Below the pieces are notes generated by a model. That model worked only from the letters and a program-made list of their open reading frames with translations. It searched no databases and was not told the DNA's origin. Positions 17,999-27,622 of a stretch of 64,000 nt of DNA are shown piece after piece. Position 1 is the first letter of the stretch; each line of letters begins with the position of its first letter. A program made the translations under genes and the position numbers. The stretch lies in sequence record MW812342.1; one strand, written 5' to 3'.

Positions 17999-18427
17999 AT
18001 GAATACACTGTCTTTCGAAGCGGGTAAAGGGTTAAGCGTTAACGGCCATCTGGTACCGGATACCAACAACCACCATTTTGAGAAGCTCTATCGCCGTATC
18101 GGCGTGGGGCGCAAGGTCAACCTGAAAGTCACCAACGAGATTGCCCTCAATGGCAACGTGGCGGACTTAGGGCCGATGTATGGCTTCCGCCCAAGCCAAG
18201 ATGCTGCGGCTGCGCTGTTGCAACACGGAGAGTTCAGCAGCGGCGTGTACGCGTTCCGTTTACTCGGTTCGCTGCGCCGTGTGTCGAACAAACACGTTGG
18301 TCAGGGCATGACACCCACCGTTTTACAATCCGGCGAAATTATCGTCCTCGTACATTCCAATCACGAACACGCTTCGGGCTTGGATTTCATGATTAGCTAT
18401 TCCGAAGTGGAGAGTGCAGATGTCTGA
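17999..18427 (+). CDS. Hypothetical protein
   Basis: 142-aa ORF, RBS TAAGGA. Confidence 0.8.
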   Translation: MNTLSFEAGKGLSVNGHLVPDTNNHHFEKLYRRIGVGRKVNLKVTNEIALNGNVADLGPMYGFRPSQDAAAALLQHGEFSSGVYAFRLLGSLRRVSNKHVGQGMTPTVLQSGEIIVLVHSNHEHASGLDFMISYSEVESADV

Positions 18428-19283
18428 TAGAACTTACCCTGTCTTAAACAACTTTGAACGTGTCGATGCATGGAACACCGAATCCGACATTTATCGCCAC
18501 GGTAATGTTCATCACCAATCTCTGAAAATGTACCGCCATCTCGGCGAACTGTGCGAAGGTGTCCAGAAGATGAAGCAGCTGGATGTGGCCTCAGCGATGG
18601 GCAAGTTTGTGGTAGCACTGGTCGGGGTTGCCTCCTTCGCAGGTATCGACGCACAGGAGCTAGATGAGCTTTACAGCTACGCGGGCAGAAAGGCTACCGC
18701 ATGTACCCCAGCACAGGCTGCGTGCAATCTGGTGCGTTCTACGACGTCTATGGTTAATGATATCAACCAGTGGCTGTCACCTGCCGGTACACAGATGGCG
18801 AGAGCCATTGCAACATCTTCCATTTGCGAAGTTTTCTGTCTGTTGAAGCAAAATGCTTCAATCAATGCGGTTGTTCTAGACCGCACCATTGAGAACGCCA
18901 CTAATACCCTTTGTGCAAAAAGGGGCAAGATGGATGAATTTGGCATTTTCCATCCCGAAGAAGCTAAGTTTGTGGGCCGGTCTTCCGGAGAGTGGGCTTA
19001 CCTTGCCATTTCCAAAGGGCTGGAATCACGCTTTGCTGAACTCAATGCGCGCTTTCAGTACGAAAACCTAACTGGCGACCTCACCGAAGTTATCGGCCAG
19101 GAAATGAATAACAAACTCAACGAGTTGTTAGAAAAACATGTTCGAATGAAGACCGAGTTAAAGCATCATCTCACTGGCCTCAATCCATCTATTGAGGTGA
19201 CTCGAAATGCCGGTGTGGTCAATATCGTAATGAACAGCGATCTGTACCAATTACTTGCTGTATTAGGAAAGGTAAAAGACTGA
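18420..19283 (+). CDS. MazG-like NTP-pyrophosphohydrolase paralog with degenerate active site plus C-terminal domain
   Basis: Aligns by eye to 22748-23581 (W..E..I...G....Q..K.Y...GE...GV.K...; R/KG.....G.F..E) but the metal-binding acidic residues are replaced. Confidence 0.6.
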
Positions 19284-20338
19284 TGAAACAGTATTTAGAG
19301 TTAATCCATACGGTGTTGAATGAAGGTCATGAGAAGGCTGACCGTACCGGCACGGGCACCATTTCTATCTTTGGCCACCAGATGCGTTTTGACCTGCGTA
19401 AGGGATTCCCGCTGGTCACGACCAAAAAGCTGCATCTGCGCTCTATCATCCACGAACTGTTGTGGTTCCTGAAAGGCGATACGAACATCCAGTATCTGAA
19501 GGACAACAACGTCAGTATCTGGGATGAGTGGGCCGACGAAAACGGTGATCTTGGTCCGGTCTATGGTAAGCAGTGGCGTGAATGGAACGCGGACAAAATG
19601 GTGTCGATTGACGACATTAATCTTCGCCAGCATCTGGAAGATGAAGGGTACGTTGAACGCGACATGATGTCTATCGAGGGTGAGCATTATTTCCTGTACA
19701 CCAAGGTCATTGACCAGATTCAAACCGTCATCGACCAACTGCGTAACGATCCCGACAGTCGCCGTATCATCGTCAGTGCGTGGAACGTGGGTGAGCTGGA
19801 CCAGATGGCTCTAGCGCCGTGTCATTCTTTCTTTCAGTTCTATTCTCGTCCAATGATGGGTAAAGAGCTGGATAGTTATTTGGCCAAATACCTTAAAACC
19901 GACGCTCGATTGGCTGCGAAACATGCCGAACAGGTTGCCCTTTGTGAAGCCGATCCAGAAGGGAGTCACGTCAGTGCTCACATGTTCTGCCTGACCAATG
20001 ATATCCCAACGCGGGTGCTGTCCTGCCAGCTCTATCAGCGCAGTGCAGATGTCTTCCTCGGCGTGCCGTTCAACATCGCTTCCTACGCACTGCTGGTTCA
20101 CATGGTGGCACAGCAAGTGGGCATGGTAGCGGGCGATTTCATCTGGACGGGTGGTGATACCCATCTGTACAAGAACCATCTGGAGCAGGCCACATTGCAG
20201 CTTTCCCGTGTGCCGCACGATCTGCCGAAGCTTGTCATCAAAAACAAACCCGACACTATCTTCGACTATAAGTTTGAAGATTTTGAAATCGTGGGTTATG
20301 AAAGTCACCCGGCGATTAAGGCACCCGTTGCCATCTAA
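19283..20338 (+). CDS. thyA: Thymidylate synthase
   Basis: DRTGTGT, PLVTTK, ALAPCH (catalytic Cys), [34 protein letters not shown]-terminus; two large insertions. Confidence 0.98.
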
Positions 20339-20347
20339 GGAGCACGT

Positions 20348-20848
20348 ATGACCGACAACGTACTGAAGTTTCCCGGCAAACCGAATGCTCACCCAGTCGT
20401 TGTCGCGCCTCGTGAGCATCGTGCCCATTTTCCCATTCAGGCCCGTAACGGGAATGTGGGTTCGTTTACAGTACCGGCGTGTGATATGTATTGGTGGGCA
20501 GCAATTTACGAACAGGTTGCTGCTACCAACCCGTATTTCGAAAACGTCTTTTACTTTTACTCCGAACCTTACGGCTGGCAAAATCAATCCTTTACGAAAC
20601 GTAAGACGTCGTGTGAGTTGACGATTGACCGCCGAACTTTGATAGAGATTCTGAAAGCGGTGGCGTACACGCACATTCTGTCTCTTGATAGTTACCTGAA
20701 CGATGACGATTACGAATTAGTTCACGACAATGCTTTGATGGTATTGGGTGACGATTTGGAAATCGATTATGCGATGGGGATATTCATGTCCCCCACAACG
20801 AACCCTGACCGGTTCATCATTAATTTCGTGGAATGCCATAATGACTGA
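20348..20848 (+). CDS. Hypothetical protein
   Basis: 166-aa ORF, RBS TAAGGAG. Confidence 0.8.
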   Translation: MTDNVLKFPGKPNAHPVVVAPREHRAHFPIQARNGNVGSFTVPACDMYWWAAIYEQVAATNPYFENVFYFYSEPYGWQNQSFTKRKTSCELTIDRRTLIEILKAVAYTHILSLDSYLNDDDYELVHDNALMVLGDDLEIDYAMGIFMSPTTNPDRFIINFVECHND

Positions 20849-21716
20849 CAAGCAAAACACCCTGTACTTCTTCTCTGACCGCTTCTACACCATGCCGGGC
20901 GACAGCTATAGCTTTGGTATCGTGGCAGCGAAAGACACCGCTGAAGCCAAACTGATGTTGGGCACCGAGCTGGTCGATGGTTTGCCGTTGGGTAAAACCG
21001 ACGTGAGTGGTCAGGTTCTGTGTGCTGAAGAAATTCGCCACATCGATCCGCGTACCGACAGCGTCGCGAAAACCGTCACCGCTGAGCTGTGGAAACTGAA
21101 TGACGGTGTGGACGTTTCCGAGCGGGTGAAATACCTGCGCGAAACCATTTCGAAAATGCAGGGTATTGATTGCAGCAATCTGGAAGTTGACTTCACGCGC
21201 TGTCTGCGTATTCCGGGCGGTTGCACCAGTACCGGCAGCGACCTGTGGCGTGTGATGGTGAAGCACCCAGACTTCCCGAACACCGTACCGATCATGTTGT
21301 CTGCACAAGGCGACGGTTCCATCACCGGTAACGACGACGTTAACTTCACCAAACTCGGTGAGAGCGAGGAATACACCTACCACGAAAACGTAGACCGTGT
21401 TCTGACGCCTGAGTGGCTGTTACTGGACTTGCTGGAACAACACGGCCTGACCCCAGAAGACTGGTACGTTATCGCCGGTACAGCGCGCGCAGCGGCGTAT
21501 AGTGCCACTCCTGTTGATGGCTGGGAAGAAGTGGACGAAGTGTACGGACAGAACGAAAGCGCGCACGTCATTCGCTTCTGGCTGAACCCAGACTGGCAGA
21601 ACCTGATTGTGGCTGCGGTGGCAAAAGTGGTTGAATCCATGCCAAAAGAACCGCTGCCAGAAAACCTCGCTGAAGAACTGGCGGGATCTGAATCTGCGGA
21701 CGAAGCCGCAGAGTAA
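20841..21716 (+). CDS. Hypothetical acidic protein
   Basis: Start 20841 overlaps the upstream stop; N-terminal segment shared with 23614. Confidence 0.75.
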   Translation: MTDKQNTLYFFSDRFYTMPGDSYSFGIVAAKDTAEAKLMLGTELVDGLPLGKTDVSGQVLCAEEIRHIDPRTDSVAKTVTAELWKLNDGVDVSERVKYLRETISKMQGIDCSNLEVDFTRCLRIPGGCTSTGSDLWRVMVKHPDFPNTVPIMLSAQGDGSITGNDDVNFTKLGESEEYTYHENVDRVLTPEWLLLDLLEQHGLTPEDWYVIAGTARAAAYSATPVDGWEEVDEVYGQNESAHVIRFWLNPDWQNLIVAAVAKVVESMPKEPLPENLAEELAGSESADEAAE

Positions 21717-21738
21717 CTTAACGATAAAGGTGAATAAA

Positions 21739-22191
21739 GTGTCTAAGACTCTAATCAACTATGATTTAGTAGTGCAAGAACTCTCCAAAGGACTGGTTGC
21801 GTTAGACAGCAGAACTGCTATTGATTGCCACATGTTACCCCATATCGCACTAAGCGAGTTCCGCACCATCCGTTATGGAGCGGGACGGCAAAAAGGTGTA
21901 ACGGAAACTGCCGCGCAGCTGGCAGGGAAGCATAACGGTCCTGCTTTGGTGCTCACACACGCAGTCGTGCTACGGGATAGCTTTGTTGTACGCTACGCAG
22001 AAAGGTTCCCTGGTAAGAGCAACGCAACCGTTCATTGTGGTTATTTGCCTGAGAACTGGCGAACTGAAAAGTTTAGTCTCGTCGTTATTGATGAAGCGGG
22101 TTTCTTTTTCAAGAAATTTGGATACGACAAAATCTATCGGTCTCTGGTACCAGTGGTGACTGACGATGTGGTAATTCACCTTATTAACTGA
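21739..22191 (+). CDS. Small P-loop/terminase-ATPase-like protein with degenerate Walker A
   Basis: GTG start after AAAGGTG; GAGRQKGVT (Walker A-like) and LVVIDEAG (Walker B). Confidence 0.55.
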   Translation: MSKTLINYDLVVQELSKGLVALDSRTAIDCHMLPHIALSEFRTIRYGAGRQKGVTETAAQLAGKHNGPALVLTHAVVLRDSFVVRYAERFPGKSNATVHCGYLPENWRTEKFSLVVIDEAGFFFKKFGYDKIYRSLVPVVTDDVVIHLIN

Positions 22192-22199
22192 GGTTGCTG

Positions 22200-22529
22200 A
22201 TGCGTCAAATTGAAAACTTTGGGCGCGGTGAACCCACGCCTGCGCCGTGGGACGGTGAGGGACTTCCACCAGTTAACGAAATGGTGATGGTTTCAGCCAA
22301 CCAAGGTTACACATGGTTCCCAATTTGCTTATTGTGGATTGGCGAGAAATCTTTTGTCTGGCGTAATATGCAGAGTGTGGCTCATGAGGGGAATGAAATC
22401 TTCCACCAAGCCCACTACTCATGTTGGCTGTATCGTCCGTTCGTGGACGGTATGGAACGCCGTTCGTATCACCGTATTGAGGAAACAGACGATGTCTGGA
22501 AAAGATTTAAGTTCACATCTGAAGCCTGA
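22200..22529 (+). CDS. Hypothetical protein
   Basis: RBS GAGGT, ATG 22200; W..EGLPP.G/N-type phage N-terminal motif. Confidence 0.7.
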   Translation: MRQIENFGRGEPTPAPWDGEGLPPVNEMVMVSANQGYTWFPICLLWIGEKSFVWRNMQSVAHEGNEIFHQAHYSCWLYRPFVDGMERRSYHRIEETDDVWKRFKFTSEA

Positions 22530-22692
22530 GGGCGCACTGTCAGAAACCATCGCAGAACATAACCGTCAGGTTGATGAGATGGATTTGTTTAACGGTGACG
22601 TGCCGGGCGTTGGCGATGATGTGTTTGTCGAAGGCGGCGCTGATGTAGGTGCCGAAGACGACAACTGTGCAGGCGGTGCCTGCAAAATTTAA
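22492..22692 (+). CDS. 66-aa acidic micro-protein ending in an NrdA-like redox tail (DDNCAGGACKI)
   Basis: RBS GAGGA at 22479-22483, ATG 22492 (in frame with track ORF 22339-22692), followed immediately by a terminator. Confidence 0.75.
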   Translation: MSGKDLSSHLKPEGALSETIAEHNRQVDEMDLFNGDVPGVGDDVFVEGGADVGAEDDNCAGGACKI

Positions 22693-22699
22693 CAAGAGC

Positions 22700-22733
22700 G
22701 GGTGTCCTTATGGACACCCCTATTTCATTTTTT
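22700..22733 (+). terminator. Intrinsic terminator ending the thyA operon
   Basis: GGGTGTCC-TTAT-GGACACCC followed by a T-rich tract. Confidence 0.8.
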
Positions 22734-22747
22734 AAGGACTATCAGAA

Positions 22748-23581
22748 ATGCAACAGACTTTTGAGTTACCGATTGAGCATAAATCCATTATCCTGAACGG
22801 CGCGGTCATCGACTTCGTCATGCCGCAGCTGGCAGTAATCGGTAAGCGCATGTCCCGCATCACTCGTCTGGCACTCAGCAGCGAGAGTCCATTGACACTG
22901 GTTAACGGCTTTACCTTCGAAGGTGAACCTGCTGAGTTCCATGCACCATTGCGTTACCACACCAGTCTGGATTTCCACAAAGAGCCCGTCTTCCATAACC
23001 GTACCGTGCCGCTCTATCGCGTGTCGCAGTGTGTGGCCAAAGTCATCGGTTGGTCAACTGACCGCGGTATTCTGGAAAACGGCCGTTGGGACTCGCAGGG
23101 TACCAAGCTGTATGAAGAAGACGGCGAAGCAGCCACCGGCGTGGGTAAAAACAAAAAGCGTCTGATAATCGACGGCATCGGTGATGCGCTGGTTGTGCTG
23201 GTCAACGTACTGGAATTGACCAGCATCGATGCGGCAGAAATTGCCCACATCTATCAGTTGGTGCGCGACACCAAAACTGTGGTGGACAACCCGCACTACC
23301 ATTTCCACAAAATGCGTAAGAACCTGACCGAAGTGGTGGATGTGGTTTACGAATGCGAAGCCATCGATTCACCGAAGAAAGTCGAAATCGGCCGCTTAAC
23401 GCACGACGAGCGTCAGCAGATGTTGGGTCATGCCCAGCAGGCGATTCACCACGCTAACCAACTGGCCCGCCATTACGATTACTCGCTCGACGAGTGCTTC
23501 TCTCTGGCGTGGGATGAAATCAAAGACCGTAAAGGTTTCCTGAACGCCGACGGCGTGTTCATCAAAGAAGCCGACGCTTAA
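22748..23581 (+). CDS. MazG-like nucleotide pyrophosphohydrolase
   Basis: KLYEEDGEA...IIDGIGDALVVL (EE..E / D..GD metal-binding motif) and C-terminal AWDEIKDRKG...DGVFIKE typical of phage MazG-like proteins. Confidence 0.85.
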   Translation: MQQTFELPIEHKSIILNGAVIDFVMPQLAVIGKRMSRITRLALSSESPLTLVNGFTFEGEPAEFHAPLRYHTSLDFHKEPVFHNRTVPLYRVSQCVAKVIGWSTDRGILENGRWDSQGTKLYEEDGEAATGVGKNKKRLIIDGIGDALVVLVNVLELTSIDAAEIAHIYQLVRDTKTVVDNPHYHFHKMRKNLTEVVDVVYECEAIDSPKKVEIGRLTHDERQQMLGHAQQAIHHANQLARHYDYSLDECFSLAWDEIKDRKGFLNADGVFIKEADA

Positions 23582-23613
23582 TTCTCGTCCACTAACAATG
23601 CAGGAGTAGGACA

Positions 23614-24468
23614 ATGGAATACCAATTATTTCTCATCACGAACGACTTCACCAAATCCTTTGTGGATGAATCGTTTCATGCCACGGTTGTCGCACCGACA
23701 GAAGCGGCAGCGCGTTGGATTGTTGCTCAACAGTGTACTGACCTTCCGATGGAAGAAGTGCGTACTGCGGCAGCTTTTGCAGTGGGTAGCATCGAAGCCC
23801 CTGCCGAGGGAATAATTTCGTTCGAGTTCGGTCGTCGTAACCGTTTCCCGGTCGTCAGTCTCGACCCGTATAAACGTCGGGAAGAGTTCGTCGAAGTTGA
23901 GCTGCACGGTGGGATACAACCGGCGCACGGCATCAACCCGCCCGTGCCGGGTGCAGTGGTCAAATGCTTCGCGAGTCGCGAACATCCGCGTGTCGTGCTG
24001 ATCCGTTCGACCCTCAAGACCGATGTCGAAACGGTGATTGAACACGTTGGGGTGACGCAGGAAGCAACGTCGATTCAGTTGTATTCGGTACATGCGCCGA
24101 CCGCGTACAAAGAGGTAGCGAAAGGTGAGGTCTTCACGACCGAATACGTCAACCTCTTTGGCGTAGACGATTTGCTGCTCGCCCGCTCACTGATTATCCG
24201 TAATACTGAACTGGCGTACCAGAACAAACGGACTGAGGACGTCTTGCTCGAACTCCAATCTTTCCTTACGGAAAAGGGTGATCACAACAGCGGCGACGCG
24301 GGAATCAGTTTCTACCCCGGTCAGAAGCTGTCGGTTCCCGATTACGGCAAGATGTCACTTTGGGTCATGTCGTTACCGCAGGTCGTTACGCTCGATCGTA
24401 CGATTACGCAAGAGAGCCTCAAACCGATTCCGAATACTAACTGCCAAACCCTGAACACAGGAGAGTAG
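23614..24468 (+). CDS. Hypothetical protein
   Basis: 284 aa, RBS AGGAG; N-terminal segment resembles that of 20841. Confidence 0.8.
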   Translation: MEYQLFLITNDFTKSFVDESFHATVVAPTEAAARWIVAQQCTDLPMEEVRTAAAFAVGSIEAPAEGIISFEFGRRNRFPVVSLDPYKRREEFVEVELHGGIQPAHGINPPVPGAVVKCFASREHPRVVLIRSTLKTDVETVIEHVGVTQEATSIQLYSVHAPTAYKEVAKGEVFTTEYVNLFGVDDLLLARSLIIRNTELAYQNKRTEDVLLELQSFLTEKGDHNSGDAGISFYPGQKLSVPDYGKMSLWVMSLPQVVTLDRTITQESLKPIPNTNCQTLNTGE

Positions 24469-24469
24469 T

Positions 24470-24970
24470 ATGTTTGATGTGAACGTCGTCCCCCATGGGG
24501 ACGAGTTCGCAGTACAGATAAACGGCGTCACCATCTGTGTCTGCGACGAACAACGGGCTAACTTCTGGCGTTGCTGCACGAGCCCGGATAAAGTCTTCGT
24601 CAGCTGTGACCTCGGTATCTCGTTTGGGGAAGAACCGCTGCGGTTGTGCAAGTTCCGTATTACCGAAACGGAGATGCGCACGTTCCTCGGTCAGGTGCTC
24701 TACACGTACGATCATCTCGACCATGAGAACCGTGTGGGCTGGGTGGAAATCGACCCGACCATCATGCGGACATTGCGACAGGGTGCTGACGAGATTGTCG
24801 AGTCACAAAGCATGTGGCTTGATGAAGATGATGTGTACCCGAAAGGGGTGCCGTTTATCCTCATCCACCCTGAACGCAACAGCCGTACCGGGGAAACCTT
24901 TATTGAGTTGATGTTCATCGAAATGCCGGAGGTTGATGATGTCGAAGAAAAAGAATCAGCTGACCTTTAA
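24470..24970 (+). CDS. Hypothetical protein
   Basis: 166 aa, RBS AGGAG. Confidence 0.8.
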   Translation: MFDVNVVPHGDEFAVQINGVTICVCDEQRANFWRCCTSPDKVFVSCDLGISFGEEPLRLCKFRITETEMRTFLGQVLYTYDHLDHENRVGWVEIDPTIMRTLRQGADEIVESQSMWLDEDDVYPKGVPFILIHPERNSRTGETFIELMFIEMPEVDDVEEKESADL

Positions 24971-25382
24971 CGCTGATAGTCAGACCATCAGTGTGAACGG
25001 CAAAAACTGGGGAAACCTCGGTTTGGCCGCATGGGTATTGGAGCGACTGGCTAACCGTTCTGCGCATTACGGTGGGTTGGATTTCGTTGTTATTGACACG
25101 CCCATCCAGTACGCGCCTTGGCAAAATTTCCATGCCATCGAAATGTACAGCGCGATTCCGAACATGATTGTGGCGAAAGTGTTGGCAGATGAGAACTACC
25201 GCGGTGGGTTTACGAACCACCACTTTGCGCTGACGTCCAGTCAGAAGTACGGCACGGCTGTCCCGCTGCTGAACAAAGTCCCGACGGACATCGGTGAGGA
25301 CGCTCTGGTCTTCTTCTTCTCGTATGACCATGCGGAACCGAACAGCGAGTTCCAGTGGACGATGCTGCATCAGATGCGTTAA
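24939..25382 (+). CDS. Hypothetical protein
   Basis: RBS GGAGG at 24928-24932; last gene before a bidirectional terminator. Confidence 0.75.
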   Translation: MSKKKNQLTFNADSQTISVNGKNWGNLGLAAWVLERLANRSAHYGGLDFVVIDTPIQYAPWQNFHAIEMYSAIPNMIVAKVLADENYRGGFTNHHFALTSSQKYGTAVPLLNKVPTDIGEDALVFFFSYDHAEPNSEFQWTMLHQMR

Positions 25383-25430
25383 ATAAAAAGCCTACCTACT
25401 CCCGAAGGAGTAGGTAGCTTTATTTTTTTT
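25380..25430. terminator. Bidirectional intrinsic terminator
   Basis: 51-bp exact copy of 8589-8639 between convergent genes. Confidence 0.9.
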
Positions 25431-25432
25431 GC

Positions 25433-27622
25433 TTACAGGTCACCACGGGCCGTACCGGTGAACGCCGTGAAGACGTTCGCCACCATACGGGCAGGAGGGA
25501 GGTCGAAGAACTTGTTCATGATTGCACCCTGCGAGAAGGCAGACTTCCATGACTGGAACTGCACATTCGCATTCTGCGTGGCTTTCGCCCAACCACTGGT
25601 ACGTTGGTGTAAGGTCGCAGAGCCCAACACTGCCATGAAGTCGGAGAACTTGTTATCGTCATCCCACACGCCGGTATCGGTTACGATAGGCATGTACATG
25701 GTACGCGACATGTCACGAATGGTAACACTGATGTCACACGACAGGGGTACGCCGTCAGTACGCCAACCCAGACCACCAACACCGAAATTCAGACTCACGT
25801 TCGTCACCATGGCGTTACGCATCGAGTAGCGACCTCGAGAGTAGGCTTCCAGATAGAACGGGTGTGTGAACGACTGCTTACCGGTGGCTAATGGGCAGAC
25901 TGCGGCCAGCCAGAAGGCCACAGGGAGAATCAGGTCTTGGAAGACGTCCAAATCTCCCCCCGACCAACAACGACACGGAATGGTGAAGGATATGTCATCA
26001 CCGGAGGTATCCGATGAATCCCACACTTCTGGGAAGTCAATCACCGACGAGTTGTACAGCGACATAATCCCTGACAAATGCAGGAAGTCCAACGCCCCGG
26101 CAAAGGCCGATTTCAACCCGGTGATTAAACCGTCCACACCGTCAATCCCGGTTTTCCCGCCTGCCAGACTCACTTCGAGTGAACGGGCTTTCTGCGTGGC
26201 GGAGTTAACCGTACCCGAAATCTCAGGCTCTTTGGTGGAGTTACTGAACGTACGGGTTGTGGTATCACGGCCGTTAATCTTCCATGTCACCCACTGGGAG
26301 CCGTTACTCAGTTCATCACCGGCCTGCTGCACGACACCGTCGGTAATCTTCGAGAACTCGCCGAACATGGTTCCGAAGGTACTCTTCTCCCCCTCGCGCA
26401 TCCAGTTCTCAATTTTCCCGGTGTCTTTCGCCAACGCTTCTCCATTGTCATCCGCTCCATTGTTGTTCGCCATGGTTTGGGCTTGGAGTTGCTGTTGGGC
26501 AACGTCTGCCGATTTTAAGAACTGTTGCTCACCACCCCCTGCACTGTCTGCGTCTGCAAACTTCGCGGTCATGTTATCCAACACTTGGTCTTCAGTCATG
26601 TCCGGGTTTTCAACCCCTTTATAACCCGCACTGGTACGCGCGAGTTGTTCAAGGGTTGACAGCGAGACTTCAAACGAGGCAGCTTTGTCCAGATACTGGC
26701 GGCTGTACGTCATGGTCTTGTAGAACGACTGAATCTTCGTGGCCATCTCGGCTTCGGTGTTCGAGGTGGCTTTGATTTCTGCAATCGTCTTCGCCTGGAA
26801 GTTCGCAAGGGTCTGGTAACGGTTAATCATTCGATAGATATCGAACTCGCCGTTAGACTTCCAGATATCCGGCAGACCGGCGTAGATGTCTTCCTTGTTC
26901 GCGTTGAAGTTCTTATTTTTGTCTTCGTCGTTTTTCGCTAAGCCAAACGACGCCAAGATATTGGTTGGCACCAGACGACGATAGAGCAGCTGCGTGTTGA
27001 CAATGTTCTGCACTGCACGTAGGTACAGGTGCATGGTCGGCTTCACGTAGTAATACTTCGAAGACTGCTTGTCGAGTACGGCTTTCATGATGCGTGGGGT
27101 AATCAGGATAAGCGCGAACGCGACCGTACCCACGGTGGCCCAGATAGCTGCCGCTGCGGTGTACGACGCCAGTGAACGAATGACGCCCGGATAATCACCC
27201 GTACGGGCAAGATACGCGAGCTTCGAGTCGTACATGTTGGCAAAGAAGGCCGCCACACCGAGGTAGCGTGGCTTACCAAAACGGCAATGCAGATAGAAGG
27301 CGTTCTGCTCAATGGATTCGTAATAGTACGCGCCTAAGCGATACGACCCTTGTGCGGAGAACGACTCAAACCACCGGCGATTACTCTGCGGGCCGGGGGC
27401 TTCTTTGGGAACCGCCAACGCACCGGTAATCGGTGGGTCAGCAAAGAACGTAAATTGGGGTGGTGCATTTAACGCGGCGTTACCGCCCACGGTGGTGTCA
27501 CTGAAGGACAGCAGCGCGTCGGAGTACGTGCGTGTGTTGTAGAAACGGGTATCCCGTGGCAACTTCATACTGCCAAACAATCCGTTCACCCACGTTGTGT
27601 CGTTGAGCGATCGTGTATCCAC
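25433..27622 (-). CDS. Baseplate/tail hub-type virion protein (phiKZ gp182 / SPN3US gp238-like)
   Basis: 729 aa directly downstream of the tape measure gene; N-terminal GGN.A.N.PPQFT.FADP and RFGKP motifs recalled for this family. Confidence 0.75.
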   Translation of the reverse strand: MDTRSLNDTTWVNGLFGSMKLPRDTRFYNTRTYSDALLSFSDTTVGGNAALNAPPQFTFFADPPITGALAVPKEAPGPQSNRRWFESFSAQGSYRLGAYYYESIEQNAFYLHCRFGKPRYLGVAAFFANMYDSKLAYLARTGDYPGVIRSLASYTAAAAIWATVGTVAFALILITPRIMKAVLDKQSSKYYYVKPTMHLYLRAVQNIVNTQLLYRRLVPTNILASFGLAKNDEDKNKNFNANKEDIYAGLPDIWKSNGEFDIYRMINRYQTLANFQAKTIAEIKATSNTEAEMATKIQSFYKTMTYSRQYLDKAASFEVSLSTLEQLARTSAGYKGVENPDMTEDQVLDNMTAKFADADSAGGGEQQFLKSADVAQQQLQAQTMANNNGADDNGEALAKDTGKIENWMREGEKSTFGTMFGEFSKITDGVVQQAGDELSNGSQWVTWKINGRDTTTRTFSNSTKEPEISGTVNSATQKARSLEVSLAGGKTGIDGVDGLITGLKSAFAGALDFLHLSGIMSLYNSSVIDFPEVWDSSDTSGDDISFTIPCRCWSGGDLDVFQDLILPVAFWLAAVCPLATGKQSFTHPFYLEAYSRGRYSMRNAMVTNVSLNFGVGGLGWRTDGVPLSCDISVTIRDMSRTMYMPIVTDTGVWDDDNKFSDFMAVLGSATLHQRTSGWAKATQNANVQFQSWKSAFSQGAIMNKFFDLPPARMVANVFTAFTGTARGDL

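Follow-up and report, generated by a model that had tools for sequence, protein, structure and literature searches.

Class Ia ribonucleotide reductase (RNR) is among the best-studied enzymes, and the dithiol tail at the C-terminus of its alpha subunit, NrdA, has so far been treated as integral to that subunit. The tail reduces the active-site disulfide and is itself re-reduced by thioredoxin (Trx) or glutaredoxin (Grx) (bioRxiv 10.1101/2021.07.31.454598; PMC9669993). Here we describe a small, acidic, disordered micro-protein of 66 amino acids (aa) whose last ~12 residues copy the class Ia NrdA tail. Its gene (22492-22692, plus strand, 66 codons plus stop) is a homologue of SPN3US gp234 and Parshik gp246 and lies in the final 64 kb of the genome of Erwinia phage pEa_SNUABM_10 (MW812342.1; Machinavirus; 238,920 bp), an SPN3US-like jumbo phage; this 64-kb stretch, 100% identical to the phage sequence and analysed as a whole, is referred to below as the window, and window positions are counted from its first nucleotide.

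Several described systems come close to this arrangement. With the tail of E. coli NrdA (C754/C759) the micro-protein has in common an acidic run, two Cys four residues apart, a Gly-Ala-Cys-Lys-Ile sequence at the free C-terminus, and disorder, but its tail stands without an RNR body, either as a 66-aa protein of its own or, in relatives, at the end of a gp244-like protein, a MazG-like protein or a deoxyribonucleotidase. Small disordered proteins acting on the RNR large subunit are known from yeast (Sml1) and fission yeast (Spd1), and Sml1 has been reported to disturb the part that the large-subunit C-terminal region plays in regeneration; the micro-protein resembles both in size and disorder, whereas Sml1 and Spd1 are eukaryotic, are not copies of the tail, and showed no sequence relation to it, no Pfam family being matched by the micro-protein at E values up to 0.1. 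Phage RNR genes can be split into separate polypeptides, as in Aeromonas phage Aeh1, whose nrdA is split by a homing-endonuclease gene. There too one RNR function is drawn from two gene products, and a contig described below (L149) divides body and tail, but in the present family only the last 12-20 residues are detached, on an unrelated enzyme or alone, and the window holds no RNR body. T4 NrdC thioredoxin and NrdH are likewise phage-encoded accessory components of the electron relay to RNR; they have a CxxC motif and a folded structure of the thioredoxin type, whereas the micro-protein is a disordered peptide of the C-x4-C type with no redoxin domain, no Pfam or NCBIfam domain of any kind being found in it and the segment that corresponds to it in a fused relative being predicted to be disordered. 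Literature searches turned up neither an account of NrdA-type tails standing alone or transplanted nor any data for SPN3US gp234; the NrdA tail itself is known, and its detachment, spread and fusions have not been described before in the literature searched.

The tail corresponds to residues 55-66 of the micro-protein (22654-22689, plus strand), with Cys codons at 22666-22668 and 22681-22683, four residues between them, and a Lys-Ile end. Directly before the tail stands a conserved Val-Glu-Gly-Gly-Ala-Asp stretch (22627-22644) common to the phage and Neisseria-type members of the family, and upstream of this an acidic, variable N-terminal part (22492-22626) whose counterpart in the fused relative P0012, a metagenome protein, is predicted to be disordered. 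In the model of P0012 (predicted local distance difference test (pLDDT) score, 76) the tail segment, residues 269-314, has a pLDDT of ~30 and is predicted to be disordered; the AlphaFold models as a set were of moderate confidence, with the tail disordered. The placement of the Cys pair at the extreme C-terminus and the predicted disorder are those of an NrdA tail, and the body of that enzyme is absent: the product is 66 aa long and matches no Pfam family, so it has no Ribonuc_red_lgN/lgC barrel.

Translation of E. coli K-12 NrdA (L014:3866-6151) showed that 8 of its last 11 residues are identical to those of the micro-protein, the figure given in the initial annotation, an earlier description of this DNA made from the sequence alone. 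The NrdA proteins of two Erwinia species have an E. coli-type tail and agree to the same extent (8/11), and the end of Colwellia NrdA (L021) is the micro-protein's last 12 residues, without a difference (12/12). When PDB chains were searched with the family profile, the sole non-ankyrin protein matched was an RNR alpha chain, 7mdi_A (773 aa), through its last 11 residues (10/11 identical, E 0.04). The remaining matches, designed ankyrin repeat proteins, align with the Gly-Ala-Asp stretch over a short length and were rejected as due to chance. With the micro-protein sequence alone as query, phmmer returned nothing relevant from PDB, NrdA being reached only by family profiles.

The tail motif followed by a stop codon was then scanned for in one genome per bacterial species, which gave at least 120 sites. 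Among the 120 sites listed, 107 are the C-terminus of an NrdA homologue, 2 are NrdA genes truncated at the locus boundary, and 11 are free-standing acidic micro-proteins of the same family (42-55 aa); none lies in an unrelated protein. By this survey the motif appears almost diagnostic of NrdA, and together with the 7mdi_A and Colwellia matches it upholds the earlier assignment of the tail to class Ia NrdA. The family profile was further run against 15,589 open segments of the motif loci and matched 95 long segments, which were taken to be NrdA because the motif-site loci were NrdA ends. The match ends exactly at the C-terminus in 94 of these 95 segments, and the alignments mostly cover the final 12-15 residues, so the piece shared with NrdA is short but specific and fixed in position. 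An extension of the likeness upstream to the Gly-Ala-acidic stretch was rejected on the length of these alignments. As judged from these sequence comparisons, the likeness to NrdA exceeds chance. A second conceivable mimicry, of the NrdA-binding C-terminal peptide of NrdB by the acidic N-terminal motif, was rejected as well: under a position matrix derived from 65 different NrdB ends, the scores of the motif did not exceed those of shuffled sequences, which control for composition (median p 0.39; 2 of 25 below 0.05).

At the level of the gene, the open reading frame (ORF) called in the initial annotation was recovered on the plus strand and its translation is exactly the 66 residues quoted there. 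The ribosome-binding site claimed for it is also present, a Shine-Dalgarno-like GAGGA (22479-22483, plus strand), read from the sequence, 8 nt 5' of the ATG. The gene is not a hidden one, as had been thought, because MW812342.1 already annotates it as a hypothetical protein (QVW56113.1), and it matches phrog_14561. It had further been placed last in the thyA operon and before a terminator. A terminator-like hairpin followed by a T-rich run does lie at 22700-22733 (plus strand; hairpin 22700-22719, 8 pairs, 6 of them G-C), with the same sequence in Parshik, but the last position in the operon is uncertain because mazG begins 55 nt 3' of it on the same strand, an order that relatives keep too. 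Between pEa_SNUABM_10 and pEa_SNUABM_6 the gene has 1 synonymous and 0 non-synonymous differences.

The micro-protein matches three PHROG families, phrog_14561 (E 7e-17), phrog_38753 (E 1e-7) and phrog_24014 (E 3e-7), all through their C-terminal ends, with residues 24-66 aligned to profile positions 9-51 of 51. These families are without annotation, and a likeness to NrdA is not noted for them in the sources searchable here; NCBIfam, like Pfam, returned no family. A HMMER search of 1.84 billion representative proteins gave 54 clusters (50% identity), nearly all of 40-100 aa and matched at the C-terminus. In cultured phages the gene was found in 57 records, all of them SPN3US-like jumbo phages, with hosts in Salmonella, Erwinia, Cronobacter, Escherichia and Proteus. 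Eight loci were read (pEa_SNUABM_10, pEa_SNUABM_6, Parshik, Caitlin, ChrisDB, Asesino, SPLA3/SPN3US and Proteus phage 7), and in all eight, which span three genera, the order is thyA, gp243-like, gp244-like, gp245-like, micro-protein, mazG, the micro-protein gene keeping its place between the gp245-like gene and mazG. Both Cys, their spacing and Gly-Ala-Cys-Lys are invariant in the 25 family members compared, of which 23 end in Ile and 2 in Leu, while the N-terminal halves of the relatives diverge strongly and the length varies from 47 to 69 aa. The gene does not have the setting of a precursor of a ribosomally synthesized and post-translationally modified peptide: its neighbours are thyA, MazG and unassigned proteins, no NCBIfam precursor model was matched, and the bacterial members have varied neighbourhoods with no shared maturase.

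What looked like a further copy of the tail in Salmonella phage SPFM8, lacking a start codon, was rejected as an artefact of the record, whose 60-base lines appear to stand in reversed order: compared with SPLA3, the SPFM8 locus L003 (LR535906.1, 36718-44753) matches only in blocks of ~60 bases, in reverse order on the same strand, and the same reversal gave odd ORF calls (P0019-P0023). The record NZ_CP173450.1 (L004; p98232-contig_4, 221,873 bp), labelled a plasmid of E. coli strain 98232 from a clinical urine isolate, carries the block from thyA through the micro-protein gene to a mazG-like gene together with large SPN3US-like genes, and it looks like a jumbo-phage genome, not a plasmid.

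The micro-protein is one architecture of several. The initial annotation described it as free-standing, which is true of the 66-aa protein of this phage, but the module is fused to other proteins in relatives. It forms the C-terminus of the gp244-like protein in two of them, a 237-kb phage contig (L013:9275-10204) and P0012, two independent occurrences of this fusion; the gp245-like gene is absent from L013. As a separate observation on that contig, thyA is interrupted (L013:6613-8510), a 416-aa ORF encoding the ThyA N-terminus together with an inserted segment and a separate 99-aa ORF the C-terminal portion, an arrangement that looks like an intron or mobile insert. Two further fusions were each found once: in P0065 the module stands at the end of a MazG-like nucleotide pyrophosphohydrolase (phrog_671, E 2e-30), of another PHROG than the MazG of the window, and in P0069 at the end of a 5'-3' deoxyribonucleotidase (phrog_2643, E 3e-15). 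All of the fusion partners found either take part in nucleotide metabolism or are encoded in a nucleotide-metabolism block.

The gene for P0069 lies, beside a dihydrofolate reductase gene, directly upstream of a phage class Ia nrdA-nrdB pair on contig L149, and this nrdA is without a tail. Its product shares 70% identity with E. coli NrdA, retains the residues equivalent to C225, N437, C439, E441, C462, Y730 and Y731, stops ~2 residues past E. coli position 740, and has no C-terminal Cys pair; nrdB starts 46 nt after it. The part missing from this otherwise intact reductase is thus precisely the one acquired by the protein encoded upstream, and nothing else points as strongly to a module able to serve RNR in trans. 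The tail-less NrdA also carries an intein at the equivalent of catalytic Cys439 (L149:1944-4970). The two contigs of this kind shown here derive from separate samples whose run accessions are adjacent. Vibrio phage EniLVp02 has a nucleotidase without the tail, and its gene does not adjoin RNR genes.

The initial annotation had noted that no nrdA adjoins the micro-protein gene or occurs in the window, and this holds for the entire phage genome and for nrdB too: tblastn searches with NrdA and NrdB queries from E. coli and from a phage found no homologue in the whole of Parshik or the whole of pEa_SNUABM_10, the second genome being searched in separate pieces. Any RNR on which the tail acts must therefore be that of the host. 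The Parshik annotation includes thymidylate synthase, dihydrofolate reductase, thymidylate kinase and MazG and lists neither an RNR nor a redoxin, and none of the ORFs of pEa_SNUABM_10 has a CGPC or CPYC redoxin motif.

The module is not confined to phages. It had been put forward as a device supplied by the phage, but free-standing copies in Neisseria, Rheinheimera and Alishewanella show that it is not phage-specific. In Neisseria a 42-aa member lies between iscS and iscU in the isc operon (L030:500-625, L060:7771-7896); in two Rheinheimera genomes the copy is upstream of a catalase gene, in the Alishewanella/Chromatiaceae group it is next to a pyrC-like gene, and on one metagenome contig it is between pspC and tag. 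Free copies are kept by bacteria whose own NrdA is already tailed. Three further observations concern these copies: the Neisseria isc copy adjoins a 232-aa ORF without a Pfam match; P0052, a database representative in which the N-terminus of IscU is joined to the micro-protein, is probably a chimera; and a Neisseria-type micro-protein on a tiny contig of an actinobacterial assembly (L114; JYOE01000079.1, 'Terrabacter sp. 28', 778 bp) is probably contamination.

The reading we favour, tentatively and short of calling it probable, is that the micro-protein would be a trans-acting NrdA-type arm, or a docking tag, for the host NrdA and its redoxin relay, working with the gp244-like protein and the thyA/mazG block. 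On the proposed mechanism host Trx or Grx would reduce the arm of the micro-protein, the reduced arm would reach the active-site region of host NrdA in trans, the arm would couple neighbouring phage proteins (the gp244-like protein and possibly MazG) to the host RNR, and the deoxynucleotide output of the host would in this way feed the phage thyA/mazG block. We infer binding to NrdA or to Trx and Grx, electron transfer, and an effect that would be productive rather than inhibitory. Action in trans on RNR is pointed to by the fusions with enzymes of nucleotide metabolism, one of which is encoded beside a tail-less but otherwise intact nrdA; to that extent the comparative evidence sides with the initial annotation, which had proposed a swinging arm supplied in trans, although the direction of its effect (speeding up, decoy, or sink for Trx and Grx) is not readable from sequence.

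A number of findings weigh against this reading. Host-type NrdA, as seen in Erwinia species and E. coli, already carries a tail tethered to its body, so it is not evident what a free copy would add, and the phage tail departs from that of Erwinia and E. coli NrdA at 3 of its last 11 positions. Only 11-20 residues resemble NrdA. The tail-less nrdA arrangement was seen in one lineage only (five contigs), and no further tail-less nrdA loci like L149 were found in IMG/VR and JGI metagenomes. The bacterial homologues do not adjoin nrdAB, and in small phages with an SU10-type portal the gene comes directly after the portal gene. As to the gp244-like partner, it has no invariant Cys, and a fold search with its predicted model (pLDDT 66.5) gave no match (top hit E 0.2, template modelling (TM) score 0.15), so what links it to RNR is gene neighbourhood alone; the idea that it is a thiol enzyme served by the tail was rejected for want of an invariant Cys.

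Since the host enzyme is already tailed, the simplest consequence of an added free copy would be competition, and the same tail evidence could accordingly describe a decoy or inhibitor, a small, disordered protein that, in competition with the native tail of NrdA, whether for redoxins or for the active-site region, slows the re-reduction of host RNR; it would be the equivalent, in bacteria and phages, of the small disordered inhibitors of RNR known from eukaryotes. In bacteria such a protein would be a brake under oxidative or iron stress, in keeping with copies in stress and redox neighbourhoods (isc operon, catalase), and in phages a means of shutting down or re-routing host metabolism. We consider this unlikely. 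The tail-less nrdA with a tail on its neighbour argues that the module can serve RNR productively, the MazG and nucleotidase fusions fit tethering better than inhibition, and blocking the host RNR looks costly because a phage without one must replicate a 239-kb genome. The NrdA tail is also a natural substrate of Trx and Grx, and the phage has no CGPC or CPYC redoxin, which would agree with a bait that recruits or sequesters Trx or Grx, or keeps partners reduced, outside deoxynucleotide synthesis and independently of RNR; the portal-adjacent, isc and catalase contexts would be easier to explain with such a general redox partner. That all four kinds of phage fusion partner or neighbour are nucleotide-metabolism proteins or are encoded in such a block speaks against it, as does the strict conservation of the end up to the free carboxyl, which, as in NrdA, suggests a specific docking site and not loose redoxin recognition, and a bait of this kind seems distinctly unlikely.

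The position of the Neisseria gene between iscS and iscU, and the strongly acidic character of a protein with two thiols, would also suit a peptide whose Cys pair binds metal or carries a persulfide, for example in Fe-S assembly, its likeness to NrdA being convergent. Such exact convergence is itself unlikely, with identity to NrdA of up to 12 of 12 residues and the motif nowhere else among the 120 sites listed, and the phage contexts are those of nucleotide metabolism, not of Fe-S assembly; we regard a metal or sulfur peptide as very improbable. Descent from the decayed 3' end of a lost nrdA, which the initial annotation had left for comparison with relatives to decide, or a chance ORF without function, might be suggested by the short length of the gene, by the tail being all that it has in common with NrdA, and by its overlap with an upstream ORF. 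As read from the sequences, distribution and conservation already refute both. The gene has its own start codon and ribosome-binding site, no other nrdA-derived sequence occurs in the genome, the gene is conserved in the 57 phage records and holds the same position in three phage genera with an invariant tail between diverging flanks, and it occurs in lineages of bacteria and of phages that are independent of one another (54 clusters at 50% identity).

In the window, the conserved module is headed by the thymidylate synthase gene (19283-20338; PF00303, E 2e-118) and continues, all on the plus strand, with the gp243-like gene (20348-20848; 166 aa; phrog_9376), the gp244-like gene (20841-21716; 291 aa; phrog_10453, a PHROG without assigned function), which lies two genes upstream of the micro-protein gene, and the gp245-like gene (21739-22191; 150 aa; phrog_2586), which separates these two genes in 8 of the 8 SPN3US-like loci read. 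Directly 3' of the micro-protein gene is that for a MazG-type nucleotide pyrophosphohydrolase (22748-23581, plus strand; phrog_7855, E 6e-118). The gp243-like, gp244-like and gp245-like proteins have no Pfam or NCBIfam match, and a gp244-like profile found nothing among PDB sequences. The gp245-like protein has an invariant Gly-Ala-Gly-Arg-Gln-x-Gly-x-Thr stretch and, in 5 of 6 aligned sequences, a hydrophobic run that ends in Asp-Glu-Ala-Gly; these motifs recall Walker A and B, and the protein may be a small NTP-binding protein. Between the gp245-like and micro-protein genes lies a 109-aa ORF (22200-22529, plus strand) whose last 38 nt are also the first 38 of the micro-protein gene; pEa_SNUABM_10 and pEa_SNUABM_6 alone have this ORF, which is missing in Parshik, and it matches phrog_22315 partially, over the C-terminal part of the profile only. 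The thyA block is flanked by two MazG-like genes, that at 22748-23581 and another at 18420-19283, which has weak matches to MazG PHROGs (E 1e-12) and its best match to phrog_10269, without assigned function. No sigma-70-type promoter-like site was seen in 18000-25500, against 5.7 expected from shuffles, which fits transcription by the phage's own RNA polymerases.

Beyond the trans-acting arm favoured for this phage lies a wider proposal, which we hold with more doubt: the NrdA dithiol tail may be a portable trans module and an optional third component of class Ia RNR, kept as a free micro-protein by bacteria and used by phages to plug their nucleotide enzymes, or the arm alone, into the host reductase, with the enzyme's own tail fully replaced in some phages. 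The tail-less nrdA contig makes the idea of a portable tail directly checkable. If it is true, the micro-protein would give a concrete hypothesis for SPN3US gp234, a conserved core gene, and for two neighbouring genes without assigned function, and it would identify an unannotated micro-protein in Neisseria and other Proteobacteria. A stand-alone or transplantable tail would then be an undescribed layer in the control or coupling of deoxynucleotide supply.
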